A stretch of DNA of 63,308 nucleotides, the filler included, from Reticulomyxa filosa (lineage: Eukaryota > Protista > Foraminifera): NCBI GenBank assembly GCA_000512085.1. It is 17 parts of 17 records of this genome, joined end to end, with 100 filler letters (N's around TTAATTAATTAA, not from the genome) between each part and the next. Parts side by side here need not be neighbours in the genome. Positions count along the whole stretch, not along the records: positions 44,905 to 53,334 come from ASPP01010557.1; 16 more parts are not named here. The stretch is one strand, 5' to 3'. This document shows, piece by piece, positions 43,251 to 54,081 of this stretch (position 1 is its first letter; every line of letters starts with the position of its first letter). The position numbers and the translations under genes were made by a program. The notes beneath the pieces were generated by a model. The model saw nothing but the letters and a program-made list of their open reading frames with translations. It ran no database searches and had not been told where the DNA came from.

Positions 43251-44956
43251 AAGTTAGTTGCACAAAACTTGTTGCTGTTGCATTTGTTTTCCTTGTTGAT
43301 GATTGTTTATTTTTTGAATTAAAACTTTTTCCTTGTTTTGATTTTTTTTCTCAACACAGTATTAGTCCTTTTCTATATTTTGAAAGTTTGACAAAAAAAT
43401 GATAAAACAAATCTACAATGTTTGCGATCTGATTCTATTATTATTCAAACTGAAACAAACAATTAAAACATTAGGTGCATATGAAATTACATCAAGCTCA
43501 CGAACATTGATCGTTTATGAAGAGTTTTTCTTGTTGTCCCTTTTCGAACTGATTTTGTTTCATTTTTGTTCGAAGATATTGTAAATGAAAAATTTTTTTA
43601 TTCTTTCCTTCATTCGCGTTAGAAGAAAGAGGTAGAATCTTTTCTACGGTGCAACAGTTAATGTTGAAAATTAGGCTGCTAATGCTAAAGTATTTATCAC
43701 ATATTTTACATTTCCAATCGTTTGTACTGTTTTACAAAAGCGAAAAATAGTTTTAATTCTTTTTACATTATTTCTTCATTTTTTTTTTGTTTGATGTTAT
43801 AACCATCCAAAATCAAATTGTTTGCGCTTTGGAAAATAAAACAATTGTCATATTGGAGATATCTTGCTTTTATTACGCACCTTTTAACAATTATTTATTT
43901 TAAAATTTATACGCTTGATTTGCAGGCTTAGTGTTCATATGCCTTGCATTTAAAAAAAAAAATTATAAACATTGCAGAGTGAGATTTTTAACAACTCATT
44001 CATTTTCCAAAAACTTTTAATACTTTTCAAAGTGCAAAATGTAAACAACATTGGAAAGTATGGATCAATTTCTATGGTGTTTGAAAATAGTTTAGTGGAT
44101 TGAAAAATCGATGTCAAATAACTCAAAACCAAAGTAATCATTCTTGTTATTTGCATTATTGTCAATATTCATACAATACGTTTTCACAGATATTTGATGT
44201 GCAAAAAATTCTCTGTTTGTTCGAAACAGCGTAGACCTATTTGTTATTATTATTTACTTTGTAATTTCGTGAACAAAAAGTTATTTAAAAAATCGCTTTT
44301 CAATGGATTCAGAACAAAATAATCCATCACTTTAGTTCAGTCGTAAGGGAAAGTGTGCTCATCAAAGAAAAAAAATTTAACGAAAATAATACGTTACCTT
44401 TCACCCGCATTTCCGCAAAAAAACTAATTATTTAAAAACCTATGACTAGGATACGGGCTTGTCCTTGTCAATACAACTTGTTTCAAAAAAAAAACAAAAA
44501 AAAACAGTTAAACATTTAACAAAAAAAAGACACTTTTGTCAGTGAAGAAAAACTCAAACAAGGGTCTAACTTTCAAAAATAATAAAATTTTTATCAAAGC
44601 TTTTTTTTGACAATAGAAACTTATCCATTTCGAAAATTAATGTTTGAAATGATTTCAAATTCATCTAATTGAATATCAATTTTAACTACAATGAAAAAAA
44701 ACTTCTACTAATTTAAAAAAAATTAACGACAAAGCATCTTCAACAATTGGAGAATAGATCATTTTGCTCAAGGGCAATTTGTTATTTCTTTTTATAAAAG
44801 AAAANNNNNNNNNNNNNNNNNNNNNNNNNNNNNNNNNNNNNNNNNNNNTTAATTAATTAANNNNNNNNNNNNNNNNNNNNNNNNNNNNNNNNNNNNNNNN
44901 NNNNAAAAAAAAAAAAAAAAAAAAAGCATAAATGTTGAAATGTCCAAAATGAATGT

Positions 44957-46090
44957 TTGTTGTTGAACACAATAGTTGATTGCTGTTGTGTGGTGTTGAT
45001 GAGCTGGTGGCATTCCAACACGTATTTTCGCTGGTGTTGCGGATGCGAGTATTGCATATTATGTTCGATGCGATTTGGTGGGAACAGCCCGGCCATTGCC
45101 AAGCACTTGTCCGCGTTGCGCGAACGGCTCCATTCGAGCGCAGAAAAAAGCAACACATTTTCATTGGATGGGAAGCAGCAGTTTTCGTCGAGCCAAGGGA
45201 CAGCGTCACCTCAAAAGACGCCAAACGGACAATCACCGGCCGGATGGAATAAAAAAGTTCGGTTTTCATTGGCAAATGAAGTCGAGTTGTCCAACCATCA
45301 CAAGCAAGAGGTCCAAGGCCCACATAAGCAAGAACAAATTGTAGTGCACACCCAGGGCGCAATCCAAATGGACAAAGCACAAGAAAAATTGATAAAAGAA
45401 AAAGAGGAAGAAAAAGATAAAAATGGCAATGGCAATGGTGTAACAGCTCCTCTTCCTACTATTACTGCTGCTACTACTACTACTACTACTGCGTTGCCTC
45501 CTACCGAAACTACTCGCTCTTTCGATCGAAAACGTGAGAATACTAGATCACATGAAGAAAAGATCGAAAGATCTGCTCATCACAGCAGCGTTCGAAATCA
45601 TAGTATTAATAATAGCAATAATAACAATGTTAGTAATAATTATAATAGTAATAGCATTAACAATAATAATAATAATAATAATAATAGTGTCAATAATAAT
45701 AATAACAATAGCAATAACGGTGGCTTCAATGCTGTCGATGATGTCAGTCCTATCAGTGAGGAAGAAGGGTATGACTTCAAAGAATGCGTCGAAGAGACAA
45801 TGGCCCACTCCTCCAAACGCCATGCTATCTCATTGCAAGTCGGTAATTCCAATGCCGATATCGACAATGAGAGACAACGCTTTGATGAGAAAACTTACAG
45901 TGACGATGTCAGTCATGATGGCAATGGCCATGAGGTCTACGAAGAAGAACTTGCCGATTTTGGCGATGATCTACAGACTCGTACGCGCACCAACACGCAA
46001 TCCGAGTTTAGTGATTGTGCGAAAACTGATGCCAGTACTGCACACTCAAGCAGAGCCGTTGGAATTCCTATTCATCCTATTCCCAGATAA
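44957..46090 (+). CDS. 3' exon of a membrane (possibly 7TM/GPCR-like) protein: last TM helix plus long low-complexity Thr/Asn/acidic tail
   Basis: 377-codon ORF. LLLNTIVDCCCVVLM is followed by a Cys cluster (WCCGCEYC) and (ACT)n and (AAT)n encoded T and N runs. The GPCR label is inference. Confidence 0.5.
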   Translation: MLLNTIVDCCCVVLMSWWHSNTYFRWCCGCEYCILCSMRFGGNSPAIAKHLSALRERLHSSAEKSNTFSLDGKQQFSSSQGTASPQKTPNGQSPAGWNKKVRFSLANEVELSNHHKQEVQGPHKQEQIVVHTQGAIQMDKAQEKLIKEKEEEKDKNGNGNGVTAPLPTITAATTTTTTALPPTETTRSFDRKRENTRSHEEKIERSAHHSSVRNHSINNSNNNNVSNNYNSNSINNNNNNNNNSVNNNNNNSNNGGFNAVDDVSPISEEEGYDFKECVEETMAHSSKRHAISLQVGNSNADIDNERQRFDEKTYSDDVSHDGNGHEVYEEELADFGDDLQTRTRTNTQSEFSDCAKTDASTAHSSRAVGIPIHPIPR

Positions 46091-46999
46091 TGATGTTGGC
46101 TTCTTGAATAATGCTCTATCGTTACCTTTTTTTTCCCACTTCTCCTACTTTTTTTTTAATTATTTTTTTTAATTATTTTTTTTTAATATTTTGCTTAGTA
46201 CAGGCCCTTGTGAATAGACAAAACTTGTGTGCATCTTTTTTTTTTGCGTGGATTTTGATCTCTTTTGTGGATTATTCTTTAGTATCATCACTGTCCGTAT
46301 CATTTTGTTTGTTTTGTTTTGTCTTGCCTTGTTTTATTTTGCTTTTGTTTTGAGCATGCAAAAGAAGGAAAAAACCACAACTGTCTAATTCGGAAAATTT
46401 TTTAGAATTGGATGAAATATTTTTTTTTGACTTTTTTTCAGCAATTTTTTGTCATTTCCGATCTCTTCTTTTTTAGATTCGATCGAGAATGAGCATTGAA
46501 TAACAAAGTTTAAAGAGTGCACGCAAGGCTCACTATCCTGAAATCTCCTTTTTTAACAACTTTATCTTTGTTTCAATGCTCTTTTTTAAAAAAAATTTAA
46601 GATAAATGATCATTATGAATGCCGCATTCGAGAATCAAAAATTGATTTTTGAACAAGTTTAAAACTTAAAGAATAAATATGTTTCATAATAAAATACAAC
46701 GTACTTTTTGTCTTCTTTTTTTTGAAAACTTGAAATAACGTTGATACTGTAGGGCACTGTCCTACCAATTGTTACCCATTGAAAGGAGATTTGAGACTTT
46801 ATCGCTTTCGCTTCCATCAAAAAGTTTTGTTAAGTTTTTAATTATTTAGATCCTCTAAGTTTTCTGTAAACGTTGCTTAAAGACTCAGTCTGGTTATGCC
46901 TTTGATTCAAAGTTAAATGAAAAACAGCAAACGACAGAATATGCACATGTTAATATATAAGTTTAATTTCACCAAATTGATTTTTTCAACAAGCGAACA

Positions 47000-49900
47000 T
47001 CACAAGATCCCACCACGTTGTTCCACAAGCAATTTTTGTTGTGGAGTTAAATCTTTTGTATTCTTCCAAATACTACCTTTCATAGATAAACCACTTTGAA
47101 TACCCGCTTTCCAAATATAATCCACCACATCTGTCTCTGTTACATCAACAATTTTACCATTATCACTACCCCATAATCGAATTGTTTTGTCCATTGAACA
47201 TGATACTAACTTCGAGCCATCGGGTGATAATTGTGCTCCATATATGCCCCCAATATGCCCTTCTAATAATTGGATTTGTTTTCCTGAAGATACATCCCAT
47301 ATTCGAATAGTTTTATCTTGTGAATATGAAATAATTTTTGAACCATCTGGTGAAAATTGTATCCCTTGTATATGATCTGAGTGCTCTTCAAATATTTGAA
47401 TTTGTTTCCCACTCAAAATATCCCACAGCCGAATAGTCTTATCATATGAGCTGGATACAATTTTAGTATCATCTGGAGAAAATTGTACTTCACTCACCAT
47501 ATCTCCATGCCCTTCAAATAACAAAAGTTGTTTTCCAGATGCTACATTCCACATTCGAATTGTTCTGTCCCATGAACATGATATAATTTTAGATCCATCG
47601 AGTGAAAATTGCGCTCCTTCTACCATATTTGTATGTCCTTCAAATATTTGAAGTTGTCTTCCAGATAGAACATCCCACAATCGAACTGTTCTATCGTAAG
47701 AACAAGATACAATTTTAGATCCATCTGATGAAAATTGAACTCCATTTACACCATCAGAGTGTCCTTCAAATTCTTGAATTTTTCTTCCAGAGGAAATATC
47801 CCACAGTAGAATGATATTGTCGTCAATTGAACATGACACAAGTTTTGAACCATCTGGTGAAAATTGAACTTTTTTCACCCAGTCAGAATGTCCTTCTAAT
47901 AAGTGAAGTTGCCTTCCAGATGCTACATCCCATATTCGGATTGTTTTATCATCTGAATATGATACAATTTTGGAACCATCTGCTGAAAATAGCAATCCAA
48001 CCACAATATCTGAATGACCCATGAACACTTGAATTTGCTTTCCTGATTGTACGTCCCATAATCGAACTGTTTTATCTACAGAACATGATCCAATTTTCGA
48101 ACCATCTGGTGAGAATTTTACTCCAGTTAAAATATTTAAATGCCCTTCTGCTAATTGAATTTTTCTTTCTAAAGCTATATCCCATATTCGGATTGTTTTG
48201 TCTTCAGAGCATGATAAAATTTTTGACTCATTTGGAAAAAATTCTACCCCATTTACAGTTTGTGAATGCCCTTCCAATATTTGAAGTTGTTTCCCTGTGG
48301 ATGTATCCCATATTCGAATTGTACTATCAGATGAACCAGATACAACTCTGGAGCTATCAGGTGAAAAGCGTGCTGAGTTTACGGTAACTGAGTGTCCTTC
48401 CAGCACTTGAATTGAATTTCCAGAAGATAGATCCCATATTCGAATTGTTTTATCTTCTGAATATGACAATACTTTTGATTCATCTGATGACAATTGGATT
48501 CCATTTATATCATCTGTGTGTCCCTCCAATATTTGAAGTTGTTGACCTAAATGTGCGTCCCAAACACGAATACTTTTATCACTCGAGTATGATATAATTT
48601 TTGATCCGTTCGATATAAATTGGGCTGCAATTACAGTATTTGAATGTCCTTCCAATGATAAAAGTTGTTTTCCAGATGATAAGTCCCATATCCGGATGCT
48701 TTTATCGCTTGAACATGACACGATTTTGGAGCCATCTGATGAAAATTGTGCTTTATTTGTCCAAACTGGATGGCCCTGTAATAATTGAGTTTGTTCCTTA
48801 GATGCAATATCCCATATTCGAATAGTTCCATTCGAACAGAATACAATCATAGAATCATCAGGTGAAAATTGCGCCGCAAGTATACCATCTGAATACCCTT
48901 TCAAAATTGGAATTTCTTGACCTGATAATACGTCCCATACTCGAACAGTTTTATCATATGAACATGACAAAATTTTAGAACCATCGTGTGAAAACTCTAC
49001 TGCTTTTATTATATCTGTATGTCCTTCCAGCACGTGAAGCTGTTTTCCAGACGATGCATCCCATATTCGAATAGTTTTATCACCTGAAAAAGATATTATT
49101 TTTGTCCAATCAGGTGAAAATTGAATTCCTGATATATAATCTGTATGTCCTTCTAAATATGCATATTCTCCAAAATAAATCCCATTCATTGATGCATTTG
49201 TGAAATTGACCTTGGTTAAGCAGGTTTGATAAAAACTCACATTATCTAAATTTGCATTACTAAAGTTCGTCCCTTCAAGGAATGCACGATCTAAAATTGC
49301 ATAAGGAATTTTAATATTGTTCCAATTTTGATAGTCCATATTAATATTAGCAGAATTGAGTATAGTGATCGCATTTGCTGCTGCAATACTAACATTTTTG
49401 TTATCTTTTGATGATTCAACGATTCGAAATAGTCTTGATTTTAGATTTATAAATATTGGATTTAGATCGTGAATCCTCTCTGCAATAAAGTGAATAATTT
49501 CTAACTCTTCATTTAATAATTTAAAATTAATAGATAAGTGTTGAACATGTGTTTCAAAATGTTGCTGAAATTGTTGGTTATTGATATCAACAATACCAAT
49601 AATATTGGGCTTCCATGAAAGGATGTCAAATATAATCTTTTGTGCTGCATAATATTCTTGACAAGATTTATGTAAAAATTGATATTTGTTATTGCCAACT
49701 CTTCTCAATACATATTTTGCAATACTATCACCATTGAAATACTCTTCCCAAATATCTTGTGTATTTATAACTGAAGTATTATCTCCATTTATTTGCAATT
49801 CCAACTTTTCATCAGTATTTTTAATGTCTGTTTCTATTATTGGATCCAATTTACTCCAAATTCTATCATCTTCTTTGTAATCATCTTCAGTCGCAACTTG

Positions 49901-52582
49901 ATTCCCTTGAATAAACATTTCAAATCCTAGATTTTGACAATATTGTTGAAATGCCAGTTTGGCCTTTTTAGGATTTGTTTGAATTCTTAATTCTGACAAT
50001 TTTTTGGAAATATTTTCAACATGAATATCAATCCATTGTTCATTGAATGCTTCATAAACTTGTGCTTTTGATATTTTGGTTCCTGCAGAATGCTTTTTCA
50101 TTAATGATGGCAATACAGTTAATATCATTCGAAGTAAAAATGGCTCTTCCATCATTTTATTCAAATTTGGATAATTTTTTAATGTTTCTTCATATTGTCG
50201 CACTGTCCAATCCAAATTATCATTCACTTTATTTTTTTTATTCATTTTCACAAACTTATTAATGTATCCATTCATTTGTTCCTTTGAAAAAGGCCATAAA
50301 TATGTCATCGATGTAATTGTTGTATTATTTGGACCAATTAAAACCTGTTTAATATCTTCATCATTTAACACATGACTTCGGCAGCTAACAATGATCTTTG
50401 CATTCCATTCACTTAAATTAAAGCGATTGTAAAAATATCTTTCATTGTCATTATTTTTGTCATATTTATCAAATATTTCATCAAATCCATCCAAAATAAA
50501 TACAAACGAAATATTTTCACGAATCACGTCAATTATTTCTTTATTGATTTGTTTCATTTGTAGAGCCTGAGAGATAATATGTTTTTCATTTAATTCATTA
50601 TAACATTTTGGTAATGAAATATACACAGGAATGGACGCTGAAGAACCATTTGTACATAATTCCCATAAAGATTCTTCCAAATGACGACCAAATAAACTTT
50701 TTCCTGACCCTGATTTTCCCTGCAATATCATTACCTTAGCTTGTTTTCGCTGTTCGCTTTTTTTCTCTTCATTTTCTTCTCTTAACAAATCAATTATATG
50801 TTGATGACAATCATATGAGTCATTTTTTTCATTATCGTCATTATCAGTGTATGAATAATTATTTGCTTGCAAGGAAATATATGTTTCAAGAGCTTGTAAC
50901 ATGGTCACATCCTCTTCTAGTTCTTGTTTCCTTGCTTTTTCCATTATCAATACAACATCAGCACAACTTGCTGGATTCATTTCGCCGATAATATGTTTCT
51001 TGAAATATTCAAATAAAATTACATGAATAGCTTTACCTTTCATTTCCTTTGGATTGAATTTACAAAGTTGATCATAAACAAACTTGATCAATTTTAATGT
51101 GATATCATTTTTGGCATTGGTTTCTTCTTCGTGTATTACTTTTAATTGAGGAGGTTTCAATATTCGAATTTCTGAATGTGGTTTGTAACGACTTGCAATT
51201 TTTTTAATTTCTTTTGTATCAATCCATTCACAGATGACATCATTGATTTTAGTCAATGTTTCGTCACTTGATTGTTTTAATTCATCTTCTGATGGATTAT
51301 TGGGTTCCCATGCTCTAATATGTTCATAAAATAAATGGCTTAATTTTGGGTTTTCGATGACAGTGTATCCTTCTAATGTTGTAAAACTCTTCAATGTTGC
51401 TTGCATTTCAATATATACATCATGTTTTGGAACATACAGTTTAATATTATGAAATCGATGATGTGTCTTTGATTGTTTACCAAAAAAGTCTTTATCTTCA
51501 GACACAATCAAATTGAATTGCTCTGCCTTCTTTATCACTGCAACAGCAGTTTGTAATTTGGTTGGATTATCACATAAAATTGTAAATCTTCCAATATCAA
51601 ATGCTTGATTAAAATCACCACCATAGTCTGCTTGAATCTTTTCCAATAATCTTTCATTTCCTTTTAAACTTGGTGGTTTCACAACAGTAATCTCATATCT
51701 CTGCAGTTCTGTCACCAAATTTTTAATTTCGATACTATTCATTGCATGTTCACTTCGTTCTCTCAAATTTTCAATATTCATTGCATGTTGTCTTATTTTA
51801 TTTGCTTTCAATTCATAAGACAATCCAGATTTGATTGTATATGAGCATTGGTAATTGTTATCCTTGATAGATGCTAAATCACCACTTGCACCAATTGAAT
51901 ATTCGGAATTATAAAACATTGCTTTGACAATTGATGTGACTGTTGATCTTTTACAATCAGGACAACTAAAAGATGTCTTATCTGATACAAATGTGATATT
52001 GTCAAATCCGATATTAACCCACACTAGTAATTTGGCTTTTGATGCCAAACAAGTGTCATTGCTGCAATATCCTTGCAGATTAATTCCTGGCTTTGTTTCT
52101 CCAATTTCTGTTTTTTCAACTTCCTTTTGCACACTCTTGCTTTTATTATCGCTTTCATTCGCTTCTTCTCTTTGTTCTCCTTTCTGTGTATTATTCAAAA
52201 AAGAGTGAAATAAATAGATGAACAGAAAAATTACTTTATTATTACCTGCTCTATATTCTTCAATTCGTTGGCTTTGCTTTCTGCTTCTAATTTGTTCTTT
52301 TTTTGTGTTAAAGATTGAATGTCCAACACCACTCAATAAAAATACATGTAATACCTCTTTTTCAATTGATTGCTGAACAAGATCTTCAATTATCAATTCA
52401 ATATCTCCATTGTGACGTGCTATCTTCTGTTGCAATTCTTCTTTGTTAATTGAATCTCCGAATAATCGAATCAGCATTTTTATTTTTTTTACATACATGT
52501 TGTCTCCTTCGTTTGTAACTTTAGAACTGTTGTTGTCTTGCATTCCTCCATTGCATTTTACTTTATCTATTAACAGTGACAT
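47000..52582 (-). CDS. NLR-like STAND protein: CUE/UBA-like + Cys-rich module + RelA/SpoT-type nucleotidyltransferase domain + NACHT NTPase + pentapeptide repeats + 16 WD40 repeats
   Basis: Walker A GKSGSGKS (50696-50719), Walker B FVFILDGFDEI, winged-helix FLHKSCQEYYAA, pentapeptides (~49165-49300) and 16 GH...WD repeats (~47170-49160). RelA/SpoT-like motifs LKGNERLLEK-DYGGD-DIGRFTI-KDF-EMQ-HLFYEHIR at ~51310-51690. Two predicted introns (52297-52354, 52184-52245) give ~1820 aa. Confidence 0.92.
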   Translation of the reverse strand: MSLLIDKVKCNGGMQDNNSSKVTNEGDNMYVKKIKMLIRLFGDSINKEELQQKIARHNGDIELIIEDLVQQSIEKEVLHVFLLSGVGHSIFNTKKEQIRSRKQSQRIEEYRAGNNKVIFLFIYLFHSFLNNTQKGEQREEANESDNKSKSVQKEVEKTEIGETKPGINLQGYCSNDTCLASKAKLLVWVNIGFDNITFVSDKTSFSCPDCKRSTVTSIVKAMFYNSEYSIGASGDLASIKDNNYQCSYTIKSGLSYELKANKIRQHAMNIENLRERSEHAMNSIEIKNLVTELQRYEITVVKPPSLKGNERLLEKIQADYGGDFNQAFDIGRFTILCDNPTKLQTAVAVIKKAEQFNLIVSEDKDFFGKQSKTHHRFHNIKLYVPKHDVYIEMQATLKSFTTLEGYTVIENPKLSHLFYEHIRAWEPNNPSEDELKQSSDETLTKINDVICEWIDTKEIKKIASRYKPHSEIRILKPPQLKVIHEEETNAKNDITLKLIKFVYDQLCKFNPKEMKGKAIHVILFEYFKKHIIGEMNPASCADVVLIMEKARKQELEEDVTMLQALETYISLQANNYSYTDNDDNEKNDSYDCHQHIIDLLREENEEKKSEQRKQAKVMILQGKSGSGKSLFGRHLEESLWELCTNGSSASIPVYISLPKCYNELNEKHIISQALQMKQINKEIIDVIRENISFVFILDGFDEIFDKYDKNNDNERYFYNRFNLSEWNAKIIVSCRSHVLNDEDIKQVLIGPNNTTITSMTYLWPFSKEQMNGYINKFVKMNKKNKVNDNLDWTVRQYEETLKNYPNLNKMMEEPFLLRMILTVLPSLMKKHSAGTKISKAQVYEAFNEQWIDIHVENISKKLSELRIQTNPKKAKLAFQQYCQNLGFEMFIQGNQVATEDDYKEDDRIWSKLDPIIETDIKNTDEKLELQINGDNTSVINTQDIWEEYFNGDSIAKYVLRRVGNNKYQFLHKSCQEYYAAQKIIFDILSWKPNIIGIVDINNQQFQQHFETHVQHLSINFKLLNEELEIIHFIAERIHDLNPIFINLKSRLFRIVESSKDNKNVSIAAANAITILNSANINMDYQNWNNIKIPYAILDRAFLEGTNFSNANLDNVSFYQTCLTKVNFTNASMNGIYFGEYAYLEGHTDYISGIQFSPDWTKIISFSGDKTIRIWDASSGKQLHVLEGHTDIIKAVEFSHDGSKILSCSYDKTVRVWDVLSGQEIPILKGYSDGILAAQFSPDDSMIVFCSNGTIRIWDIASKEQTQLLQGHPVWTNKAQFSSDGSKIVSCSSDKSIRIWDLSSGKQLLSLEGHSNTVIAAQFISNGSKIISYSSDKSIRVWDAHLGQQLQILEGHTDDINGIQLSSDESKVLSYSEDKTIRIWDLSSGNSIQVLEGHSVTVNSARFSPDSSRVVSGSSDSTIRIWDTSTGKQLQILEGHSQTVNGVEFFPNESKILSCSEDKTIRIWDIALERKIQLAEGHLNILTGVKFSPDGSKIGSCSVDKTVRLWDVQSGKQIQVFMGHSDIVVGLLFSADGSKIVSYSDDKTIRIWDVASGRQLHLLEGHSDWVKKVQFSPDGSKLVSCSIDDNIILLWDISSGRKIQEFEGHSDGVNGVQFSSDGSKIVSCSYDRTVRLWDVLSGRQLQIFEGHTNMVEGAQFSLDGSKIISCSWDRTIRMWNVASGKQLLLFEGHGDMVSEVQFSPDDTKIVSSSYDKTIRLWDILSGKQIQIFEEHSDHIQGIQFSPDGSKIISYSQDKTIRIWDVSSGKQIQLLEGHIGGIYGAQLSPDGSKLVSCSMDKTIRLWGSDNGKIVDVTETDVVDYIWKAGIQSGLSMKGSIWKNTKDLTPQQKLLVEQRGGIL
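47170..49160 (-). repeat. Coding tandem array of 16 WD40 units (~126 bp, 42 aa)
   Basis: Consensus LEGHxxxVxGVQFSPDGSKIVSCSxDKTIRIWDxxSGKQLQI, counted 16 times in the translation. Confidence 0.92.
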
Positions 52583-54081
52583 ATTTTCATAATTTATGCA
52601 GTCATATATTGCTTTGCTGTTATAATTTTTTTGTAAGAATATACAAATATTTCAATTAACCCACCAGAATCCCTGTCATCGACAATATTTGCAAAATATC
52701 TAAATGGGTTTACAATGAACAATAATGCTAAAGAGAGATTAGCACTACTTAGTGTCTTTATTAGTTTGCCAACAACATGTTAGAATACAAACCTTTTTCA
52801 TTGTCCGAAAAACCGATAAAACACAATTAGAAATAAAATCAACCTCAAAACATTCCATGTCGTTCCTCTTGTCGCAATTACGCATCATTCCTAAAAACGA
52901 TCATGCAGGGTTTTGTTAAGAAAAAATATAGGTGAACGCTTTTGCGCAAGAAAAAAACTTATAGTTAGGTCTTGAATATTCTTTTGAAAAAGGCACTAGG
53001 GTGTAGTCACTTCATTTGAAAAACTGCATTAATTTGTAATGTGCAAAGCCATATTCCACGGAAAACATGTACTATTATTAAAGTTGTTTATTTAAATTTG
53101 ATTGAATTGTGAATTATTTGTGTTTGTTTATTAATAAAATTCATTTTAAAAAATTTGTTTTCAATATTATTCAAAATGAGATAATTGAAACTAATAAATA
53201 AATAATAACATTTATTTGTAAATGAATACATGAATTTGTAGATTTAAATTATGTAAAAGATGCAAAATTTTCTCCTGATGGTTTATATGTCATATTTTAT
53301 TTGGGAAATGGCCTTATTCATATACACAATGTACNNNNNNNNNNNNNNNNNNNNNNNNNNNNNNNNNNNNNNNNNNNNTTAATTAATTAANNNNNNNNNN
53401 NNNNNNNNNNNNNNNNNNNNNNNNNNNNNNNNNNCCCCCAGGTTCGCCCTCCCCGACCCAAGCCAACTGCAGCCGGTATGAACATTCGCAATATATAATT
53501 TCAATTACTACTATTGAGGTAGTATAAAACCTCATTCTTCTCTTGATCCCTTACCTTATATATTTTTTCATTCATCACACTTTTTTTTTCTTCATTTTTT
53601 TTTTTCAATAGGAAAATCATTAATCAAAACTGAGTTTTGCAATGGAAAAAAAGTTGATGTTTCACTATTGGAATTCGCCGAGAAAACATTTTACAAAAAA
53701 TCTTTTTCGAAAATGCAACTTTTCAAACGTCGAAAATGTAGACAGAACCACGAGCGCAAGCAAAATGTTACTTTTCTTTAATATAAAAAATAAACAATCA
53801 ATCCAACATCAAACCCTTACGTCCTAAGAAAAACAAAGGAAAATCATTTGACTTGGTTTACAAACTCAATCGTTTAGAAAAAAACCTAAAAATAAAATAA
53901 TTAAAAATAACAAGAAAGCTTTTTAACCTTTTCAACAACCCCAATTTATTATGTATTATTATTTTTTGTTCCTTGTTAATGACTTTTTTTACCTTGCAAG
54001 AAAAAAGACAACTAAGCAAATGTAGGGGACATCAATAACAAAGAAACCTTTGGACGGAGATTTGTTTCAAAACAATAATTG

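Follow-up and report, generated by a model that had tools for sequence, protein, structure and literature searches.

The window analysed here, a stretch of 63,308 nucleotides (nt), joins 17 parts of the genome of the freshwater foraminifer Reticulomyxa filosa. The part at positions 44905-53334 contains one long open reading frame (ORF), which is located on the minus strand (47000..52582) and runs stop-free over 1860 codons plus the stop codon. The NCBI model of the same gene begins at Met14 and comprises 1847 amino acids (aa). From the N- to the C-terminus the protein consists of a conserved N-terminal segment, a four-cysteine beta domain, a domain of the RelA/SpoT homologue (RSH) type, a NACHT NTPase, pentapeptide repeats and 16 WD40 repeats. 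It is rather likely that the gene product is an intracellular receptor of the STAND (signal transduction ATPases that have numerous domains) and NOD-like receptor (NLR) type, with an RSH domain similar to the bacterial toxin Tas1 as its likely effector. The features of the locus, in coordinates of the window, are the following:

47000..52582, minus strand: whole NLR-like ORF (ORF scan; NCBI model)
52355..52582, minus strand: proposed exon 1, aa 1-76 (paralogue comparison)
52297..52354, minus strand: probable intron 1, 58 nt, GT..AG (paralogue comparison)
52246..52296, minus strand: probable exon 2, 17 codons, NKLEAESKANELKNIEQ (own-frame translation; paralogue linkers)
52184..52245, minus strand: probable intron 2, 62 nt, GT..AG (paralogue comparison)
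51788..52105, minus strand: four-cysteine all-beta domain, aa 160-265 (AF2 model; paralogue alignment)
51233..51745, minus strand: RSH synthetase-fold domain, Tas1-like, aa 280-450, putative effector (Pfam, profiles, AF2/Foldseek)
51635..51667, minus strand: LKGNERLLEKI (Lys307, Arg311, Lys315), donor-ATP phosphate-binding motif (alignment with Tas1 and RelP)
51596..51598, minus strand: codon of Asp329 in FDIGRFTI (alignment; 38/38 copies)
51446..51466, minus strand: G-loop equivalent THHRFHN, His375 codon at 51458-51460 (alignment)
51407..51409, minus strand: codon of Glu392 in IEMQAT (alignment; 38/38 copies)
51314..51340, minus strand: SHLFYEHIR (His416, Tyr419, Arg423), distal motif (alignment with Tas1)
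50753..51232, minus strand: linker between RSH and NACHT, about 160 aa (62% conserved among paralogues)
50243..50752, minus strand: NACHT NTPase, Walker A at 50696-50719 and Walker B at 50477-50497 (Pfam)
49178..49342, minus strand: pentapeptide-repeat stretch directly before the WD40 array (Pfam)
47153..49177, minus strand: 16 WD40 repeats, putative sensor (Pfam; Tandem Repeats Finder, TRF)

The NACHT NTPase was recognised by Pfam (PF05729, aa 617-778, E 7e-9) with 36.1 bits compared to a cut-off of 26.7. It contains the Walker A motif GKSGSGKS (aa 622-629) and the Walker B motif ILDGFDE (aa 696-702), and FLHKSCQEY is found at aa 969-977. A pentapeptide-repeat stretch (about aa 1081-1135, E 7e-7, Pfam) separates the NACHT-associated region from the WD40 array. 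In this array Pfam found 16 WD40 stretches (about aa 1136-1810), and TRF detected a 126-nt unit in 15.1 copies with 64% identity; the mean pairwise identity of the 42-aa units is 54%. The original prediction, made from the sequence alone, had described an NLR-like receptor with a RelA/SpoT domain as N-terminal effector. The ORF, the NACHT motifs and the motifs of the RSH-like segment all lie where it had placed them, the codons of Asp329 and Glu392 do start at 51598 and 51409 as it had stated, and the tripartite order of RSH (aa 280-450), NACHT (aa 617-778) and 16 WD40 repeats at the C-terminal side is present. The RSH domain does precede NACHT but does not form the N-terminus, since a short segment and the four-cysteine domain lie in front of it. 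For aa 14-76, the linker at aa 451-610 and the post-NACHT region at aa 781-1080 nothing significant was found in Pfam, and scans of the RSH domain and of aa 1-620 with NCBIfam and PADLOC gave nothing relevant. Within the WD40 unit, positions 14-16, 18 and 34 vary most, which brings to mind hypervariable sites in the NACHT-WD40 genes of fungal allorecognition.

The assignment of aa 280-450 to the RSH synthetase fold, and within it to the Tas1/Apk1-like branch, is well supported by a predicted structure together with independent sequence profiles, in line with the fold originally proposed for this segment. The Pfam family PF04607 matches the window copy with E 4.3e-4 (21.0 bits); at E<=0.01 it also detects 36 of the 38 paralogous copies, the best of them with 2.9e-7, and for the paralogue P0031 a precomputed PF04607 match exists. 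When the single sequence was compared to all PDB sequences, Tas1 (6ox6) was the sole meaningful match (E 0.063, phmmer). It was also at the top for a profile of the 38 Reticulomyxa copies only (E 0.0039, hmmsearch). After widening of this profile with distant relatives, Tas1 was matched with 1.9e-25, followed by YwaC (1.9e-12), RelP (1e-7), RelQ (2e-7) and Rel (4.5e-6). Furthermore, hhalign aligned the Reticulomyxa-only copies with 22 non-Reticulomyxa relatives at a probability of 99.7 (E 1.7e-25).

The AF2 (AlphaFold2) model of the domain, built on the 38 copies, reached a mean predicted local distance difference test score (pLDDT) of 80 and a predicted template modelling score (pTM) of 0.70. 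Its top 50 Foldseek matches in the PDB are RSH synthetases throughout, with Tas1 in first place (E 3e-7, template modelling score (TM) 0.63), then RelQ/SAS1, RelP, Rel, an exported Streptomyces synthetase and CapRel. VIA-align gave Z 12.1 to 5ded and to 6ox6 (156 residues, 22% identity) and Z 10.5 to 7ztb (CapRel), RSH structures overall being found at Z 10-12. RsfS/iojap (Z 9.9) and Pol lambda/mu (Z 8.9) were rejected, as their values are lower than 12.1 and come without sequence support.

Most motifs of the RSH active site can be aligned with those of characterised enzymes. LKGNERLLEKI (aa 306-316), corresponding to the donor-ATP phosphate binder, aligns with IKSRERAMQKI of Tas1 and VKEMRSLIEKL of RelP. 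Thereby Lys307, Arg311 and Lys315 fall on K-x3-R-x3-K of Tas1 and K-x3-S-x3-K of RelP; they are invariant or present in 37 of the 38 copies. FDIGRFTI (aa 328-335) aligns with KDLARNTI of Tas1 and LDIAGIRV of RelP, which places Asp329 at the Asp of the motif D-x-x-G/R-x-R/T-I, as also seen with YwaC. By analogy with D90 of FaRel2 (PMC11782079), Asp329 may be the residue holding Mg2+. IEMQAT (aa 391-396) corresponds to the E-x-Q motif (EIQVNS in Tas1, EIQIRT in RelP), and SHLFYEHIR (aa 415-423) to GHKYYEDWR of Tas1. Lys307, Asp329, Arg332, Glu392, Gln394 and Tyr419 are invariant in 38/38 copies. The catalytic Asp and Glu, described as intact beforehand, are thus conserved among the paralogues as well.

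All close relatives of the gene originate from R. filosa. At least 47 proteins of 1000-2000 aa, including the NCBI model of the gene itself, exhibit the same domain followed by NACHT and WD40. A further 30 short or partial models match the RSH domain, the partial ones being located mostly on very short contigs. An exhaustive search with a hidden Markov model (HMM) against 1.84 billion representatives gave about 43 matches down to E 5e-9; all of these top matches with a named source are from R. filosa, as are the three 833-1017-aa models that were looked up (P0078, P0086). Below this group there is a gap, then 32 distant relatives follow (E 1e-8 to 1e-3). No second rhizarian was found at close range in this search. 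When 32 long paralogues were compared to the window protein, the mean identity was highest in the RSH domain (0.81) and lowest in the WD40 array (0.57), with values of 0.72 for the pentapeptide stretch, 0.68 for the four-cysteine domain, 0.67 for NACHT and 0.62 for the linker. For an NLR repertoire one would expect just this combination of a constant effector with a repeat sensor that diversifies.

Two further observations were made among the paralogues. P0031 (RFI_08856) contains two full RSH copies in tandem (aa 140-310 and 522-692) before NACHT. Behind the RSH domain of many paralogues, its first helix-strand motif recurs faintly (about aa 455-483 in the window protein), with individual E-values that are not significant. 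Bacterial contamination was considered as a source of the gene and rejected, since the composition is AT-rich throughout (GC content about 0.27-0.37 across the gene), probable introns of spliceosomal type are present and dozens of paralogues exist in R. filosa.

These probable introns concern the 5' end. Residues 77-133 of the ORF are hydrophobic junk, and the paralogues occupy just 18% of the corresponding columns. The region contains two GT..AG stretches, 52354-52297 (58 nt) and 52245-52184 (62 nt). The sequence between them (52296-52246), translated in its own frame, reads NKLEAESKANELKNIEQ and matches the K-L-E-A-E-x-K-x-N-E-L linker of P0043, P0037 and P0039; only in this frame does the 17-codon exon 2 fit the paralogue linkers. 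As judged from these comparisons, there are probably two short introns, which are read through by both the ORF and the NCBI model. The ORF can run through them because they total 120 nt, contain no stops and restore the frame. What had been called an uninterrupted gene is therefore uninterrupted as an ORF but probably not as a gene. The proposed introns fall outside the RSH, NACHT and WD40 parts.

Upstream of the introns, a segment at about aa 28-72, within aa 28-76 (window 52355-52501), is conserved in the paralogue alignment. It has no Pfam match; judged by eye, a helical module of the UBA/CUE kind would be a guess. The four-cysteine domain (aa 160-265) contains the invariant residues Cys173, Cys178, Cys207 and Cys210 in the arrangement C-x4-C ... 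C-P-D-C and is predicted by AF2 to be all-beta (pLDDT 87). Foldseek gave no PDB match for it at E<=0.001, and the best VIA-align value (Z 6.1) was obtained with generic beta-sandwich or cupin-like chains, so that no convincing PDB match was found. A TM of about 0.7 was reached with models predicted for uncharacterised proteins of rotifers and sponges; some of these proteins carry fusions to ubiquitin or ADP-ribosyltransferase domains. In a search of a language-model atlas all scores for this domain remained below 0.8.

Outside Reticulomyxa, the distant relatives of the RSH domain occur in diverse contexts, and several of them pass PF04607 unaided. P0121 from a metagenome (L001:2745-6257) combines ankyrin repeats, an RSH domain retaining the G-loop Tyr and NACHT, and P0108 is a shorter relative. 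P0110 and P0118 are RSH-TPR proteins, P0136 is an RSH-TPR-kinase fragment, P0112 is a distant relative from Guillardia theta, and P0113 and P0117 are DUF285 fusions. Bacterial toxins were found, too, with modules of the extracellular contractile injection system (eCIS) core (P0109, P0119) or a phage MuF module (P0122). In a quick maximum-likelihood tree, whose weak deep branches make the placement of clades a lead only, the Reticulomyxa copies form one clade (SH-aLRT 99). This clade adjoins P0110, P0108 and P0121 with an SH-aLRT of 90, which is not strong; the eCIS toxins and the majority of unnamed relatives are placed separately. A word-index homology search starting from P0121, the closest non-Reticulomyxa relative with NACHT, returned the self-match only, and there was no fungal member among the named matches of the homology searches made.

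The remainder of the 44905-53334 part contains a convergent ORF on the plus strand (44957-46090, 377 codons) with long Asn-rich and Thr-rich low-complexity runs and no match to a Pfam family. At the left edge of this part the GC content rises up to 0.44.

According to the mechanism we favour, binding of a ligand by the WD40 propellers would lead to oligomerisation of the NACHT module, and the RSH domains clustered in this way would be switched on. We infer the catalytic activity of the RSH domain and its product by analogy: it would take pyrophosphate from ATP and place it on the 3'-OH of a nucleotide with adenine or guanine as base, giving a (p)ppApp-like product and ATP depletion as with Tas1, or alternatively on an RNA end, as is the case for CapRel and FaRel2 with tRNA. 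As a result, the part of the syncytium concerned may be arrested or die, be it in immunity or in allorecognition. The wider proposal would be a repertoire of at least 50 NLR genes in R. filosa, a giant syncytial foraminifer capable of fusion, that share a Tas1-like executioner of the His type. This executioner would make an alarmone-like nucleotide or modify an RNA end with a specificity unseen in bacteria, and the repertoire would have had an origin of its own in Rhizaria, separate from that in fungi, with a bacterial toxin domain as the probable source. We put this forward as a tentative, though quite possible, scenario.

Several points weigh against the favoured mechanism. The Reticulomyxa family has H-H-R-F where relatives have G-Y-R-D/S, so that the position of the G-loop Tyr is occupied by His375 in the window copy and by His in 34, Tyr in three and Asp in one of the 38 copies, whereas this Tyr is nearly invariant in the non-Reticulomyxa relatives. 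In alarmone synthetases it touches the acceptor base, and already the exchange Y128F impairs FaRel2 (PMC11782079). The Arg of the E-x-Q-x-R-T motif is missing, too, likewise in Tas1. The window copy stays under the gathering threshold of PF04607 (21 vs 27 bits), the alignment supplied to AF2 consisted of close paralogues only, and the idea that oligomerisation activates the protein is borrowed from what holds for other STAND proteins. Furthermore, many paralogue models are fragments, and part of the family may therefore be decaying. Judged from the alignments, the donor side of the active site looks intact, and the His at the G-loop Tyr position suggests that the acceptor side is altered. The exchanged Tyr and the low Pfam score would also be expected if the domain were a pseudoenzyme that has kept the fold and serves as an adaptor, a nucleotide sensor or a homotypic interaction module, and inactive nucleotide-enzyme domains are known from related conflict systems (PMC7159879). 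We regard this explanation as doubtful: none of the 38 copies departs from the Asp, Glu, Gln and Lys/Arg at catalytic and ATP positions, and no other part of the protein is conserved as well as the RSH domain, which is unexpected for a mere scaffold. Moreover, His is also able to stack on a base, and three copies retain the Tyr.

If the domain is active, its product might act as a diffusible second messenger for a separate effector and not as a direct toxin depleting ATP or attacking tRNA. Nucleotide-generating domains of STAND and other conflict systems often signal in this manner (PMC7159879), and the Tas1/Apk1 family includes makers of (p)ppApp and of (p)ppGpp (PMC12691689), so that product and role are not fixed by the family. 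However, the 8.4-kb part contains no candidate gene for a receptor or effector, and the nearest characterised relative, Tas1, works through bulk ATP consumption (PMC11782079), which makes a messenger function improbable. An alarmone directed at bacteria, be they prey, symbionts or pathogens, as raised for fungal RelA_SpoT NLRs by Dyrka et al. 2014 (PMC4986451), is considered very unlikely: there is no export module among the Pfam matches of the protein (signal peptides were not screened), a charged cytosolic nucleotide would poorly enter bacteria, and the closest characterised relatives are toxins acting within the cell that holds them (PMC11782079, PMC12691689). Finally, the many partial or disrupted paralogue models and the fact that no R. 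filosa RNA run is listed could indicate a decaying, non-functional, repeat-like expansion in which the intact ORF is incidental. But the partial models lie mostly on those very short contigs, the 5.6-kb ORF is stop-free, and functional residues are invariant over 38 copies. The region-specific conservation (RSH 0.81 vs WD40 0.57) argues for selection and against decay, which we hence consider highly unlikely. The preferred mechanism, a ligand-activated NLR that would switch on a Tas1-like pyrophosphokinase, is reasonable by analogy.

RSH pyrophosphokinases have been known as stress enzymes of bacteria, as toxins used between bacteria and as effectors of phage defence. The present finding adds a second, very distant eukaryotic lineage for the combination of RSH and NLR, with dozens of copies in one genome, an effector from the Tas1-like toxin branch and an effector held more constant than the sensor. 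It represents a new lineage and a divergent member, with many more copies, of an architecture catalogued in fungi, not a new kind of system; both the domain combination and the toxin logic have already been published. Next to fungi, R. filosa thus offers a second system in which to ask if NLRs of eukaryotes kill or signal via alarmone-type nucleotides, and the natural Tyr/His variation in the acceptor loop may serve as a handle on substrate choice.

Among the bacterial proteins, Tas1/Apk1 of Pseudomonas aeruginosa (6ox6) is the best match to the RSH domain of the window gene in both sequence and structure. The two share K-x3-R-x2-(E/Q)-K-I, D-x-x-R-x-T-I, E-x-Q without the following Arg, and H-x2-Y-E-x2-R. 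In contrast to the window gene, Tas1 is a type VI-secreted (p)ppApp synthetase toxin, from a family of exported alarmone synthetases, with the immunity protein Tis1 and without a STAND module; the identity is about 22%, and Tas1 retains the G-loop Tyr where the window copy has His375. Tas1 synthesises (p)ppApp and thereby depletes ATP, and toxic small alarmone synthetases (toxSAS) do likewise or pyrophosphorylate the CCA ends of tRNA (PMC11782079). CapRel(SJ46), FaRel2 and other toxSAS, which belong to toxin-antitoxin and phage-defence systems, resemble the window gene in the RSH fold and in the fusion of a sensor with a toxic RSH effector, which is set free once an invader is detected. They differ in being bacterial and controlled by a pseudo-zinc-finger antitoxin instead of a STAND NTPase, and are more distant in sequence than Tas1. 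RelQ/SAS1, RelP/SAS2, YwaC and Rel/RelA/SpoT exhibit the same fold with aligned Asp, Glu and basic residues, but these small alarmone synthetases and long Rel enzymes perform housekeeping (p)ppGpp synthesis, contain a GYRS-x-H G-loop and E-x-Q-x-R-T, and reach about 12-17% identity only. RelA/SpoT-like domains, furthermore, have an established place among the toxin modules of polymorphic toxin systems, MuF fusions included (PMC3482391), and in the NTP-dependent conflict systems of prokaryotes the RelA domain occurs as an effector, though rarely (PMC7159879).

Among eukaryotic proteins, the allorecognition receptors HET-E/D/R of the fungal NWD family (PMC4986451) share with the window gene the NACHT domain and long arrays of 42-aa WD40 units that vary at few positions. 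Their effector is HET instead of RSH, and the fungal repeats can exceed 80% identity compared to 54% here. RelA_SpoT is one of 12 N-terminal effector classes of fungal NLRs, including the arrangement RelA_SpoT-NACHT-WD40 (Dyrka et al. 2014, PMC4986451), and was listed in 2025 as a canonical N-terminal domain of Sordariales NLRs (PMC12258605). The architecture found in the window, RelA_SpoT N-terminal to NACHT with WD40 repeats, fits the description of this class. The novelty initially suggested for the architecture hence does not hold, whereas the statement that no characterised eukaryotic NLR with this effector is known still stands: no biochemical assay of a RelA_SpoT NLR domain is reported in the literature examined, and the domain order is known from fungal surveys. 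A literature search for papers joining Reticulomyxa with NACHT found none. The fungal RelA_SpoT NLRs, e.g. of Gaeumannomyces graminis, have the same order of effector, NACHT and repeats and an effector likewise inferred to be enzymatic (class 1). They belong to Opisthokonta, whereas the window gene is from Foraminifera (Rhizaria), and their RSH domains are found directly by PF04607; the window gene has two additional N-terminal modules and the pentapeptide stretch. In fungal NLRs the RelA_SpoT class is rare, with less than 1% of N-terminal annotations (PMC4986451) and about 17 NLRs across Sordariales (PMC12258605), compared to at least 47 copies in the genome of R. filosa.

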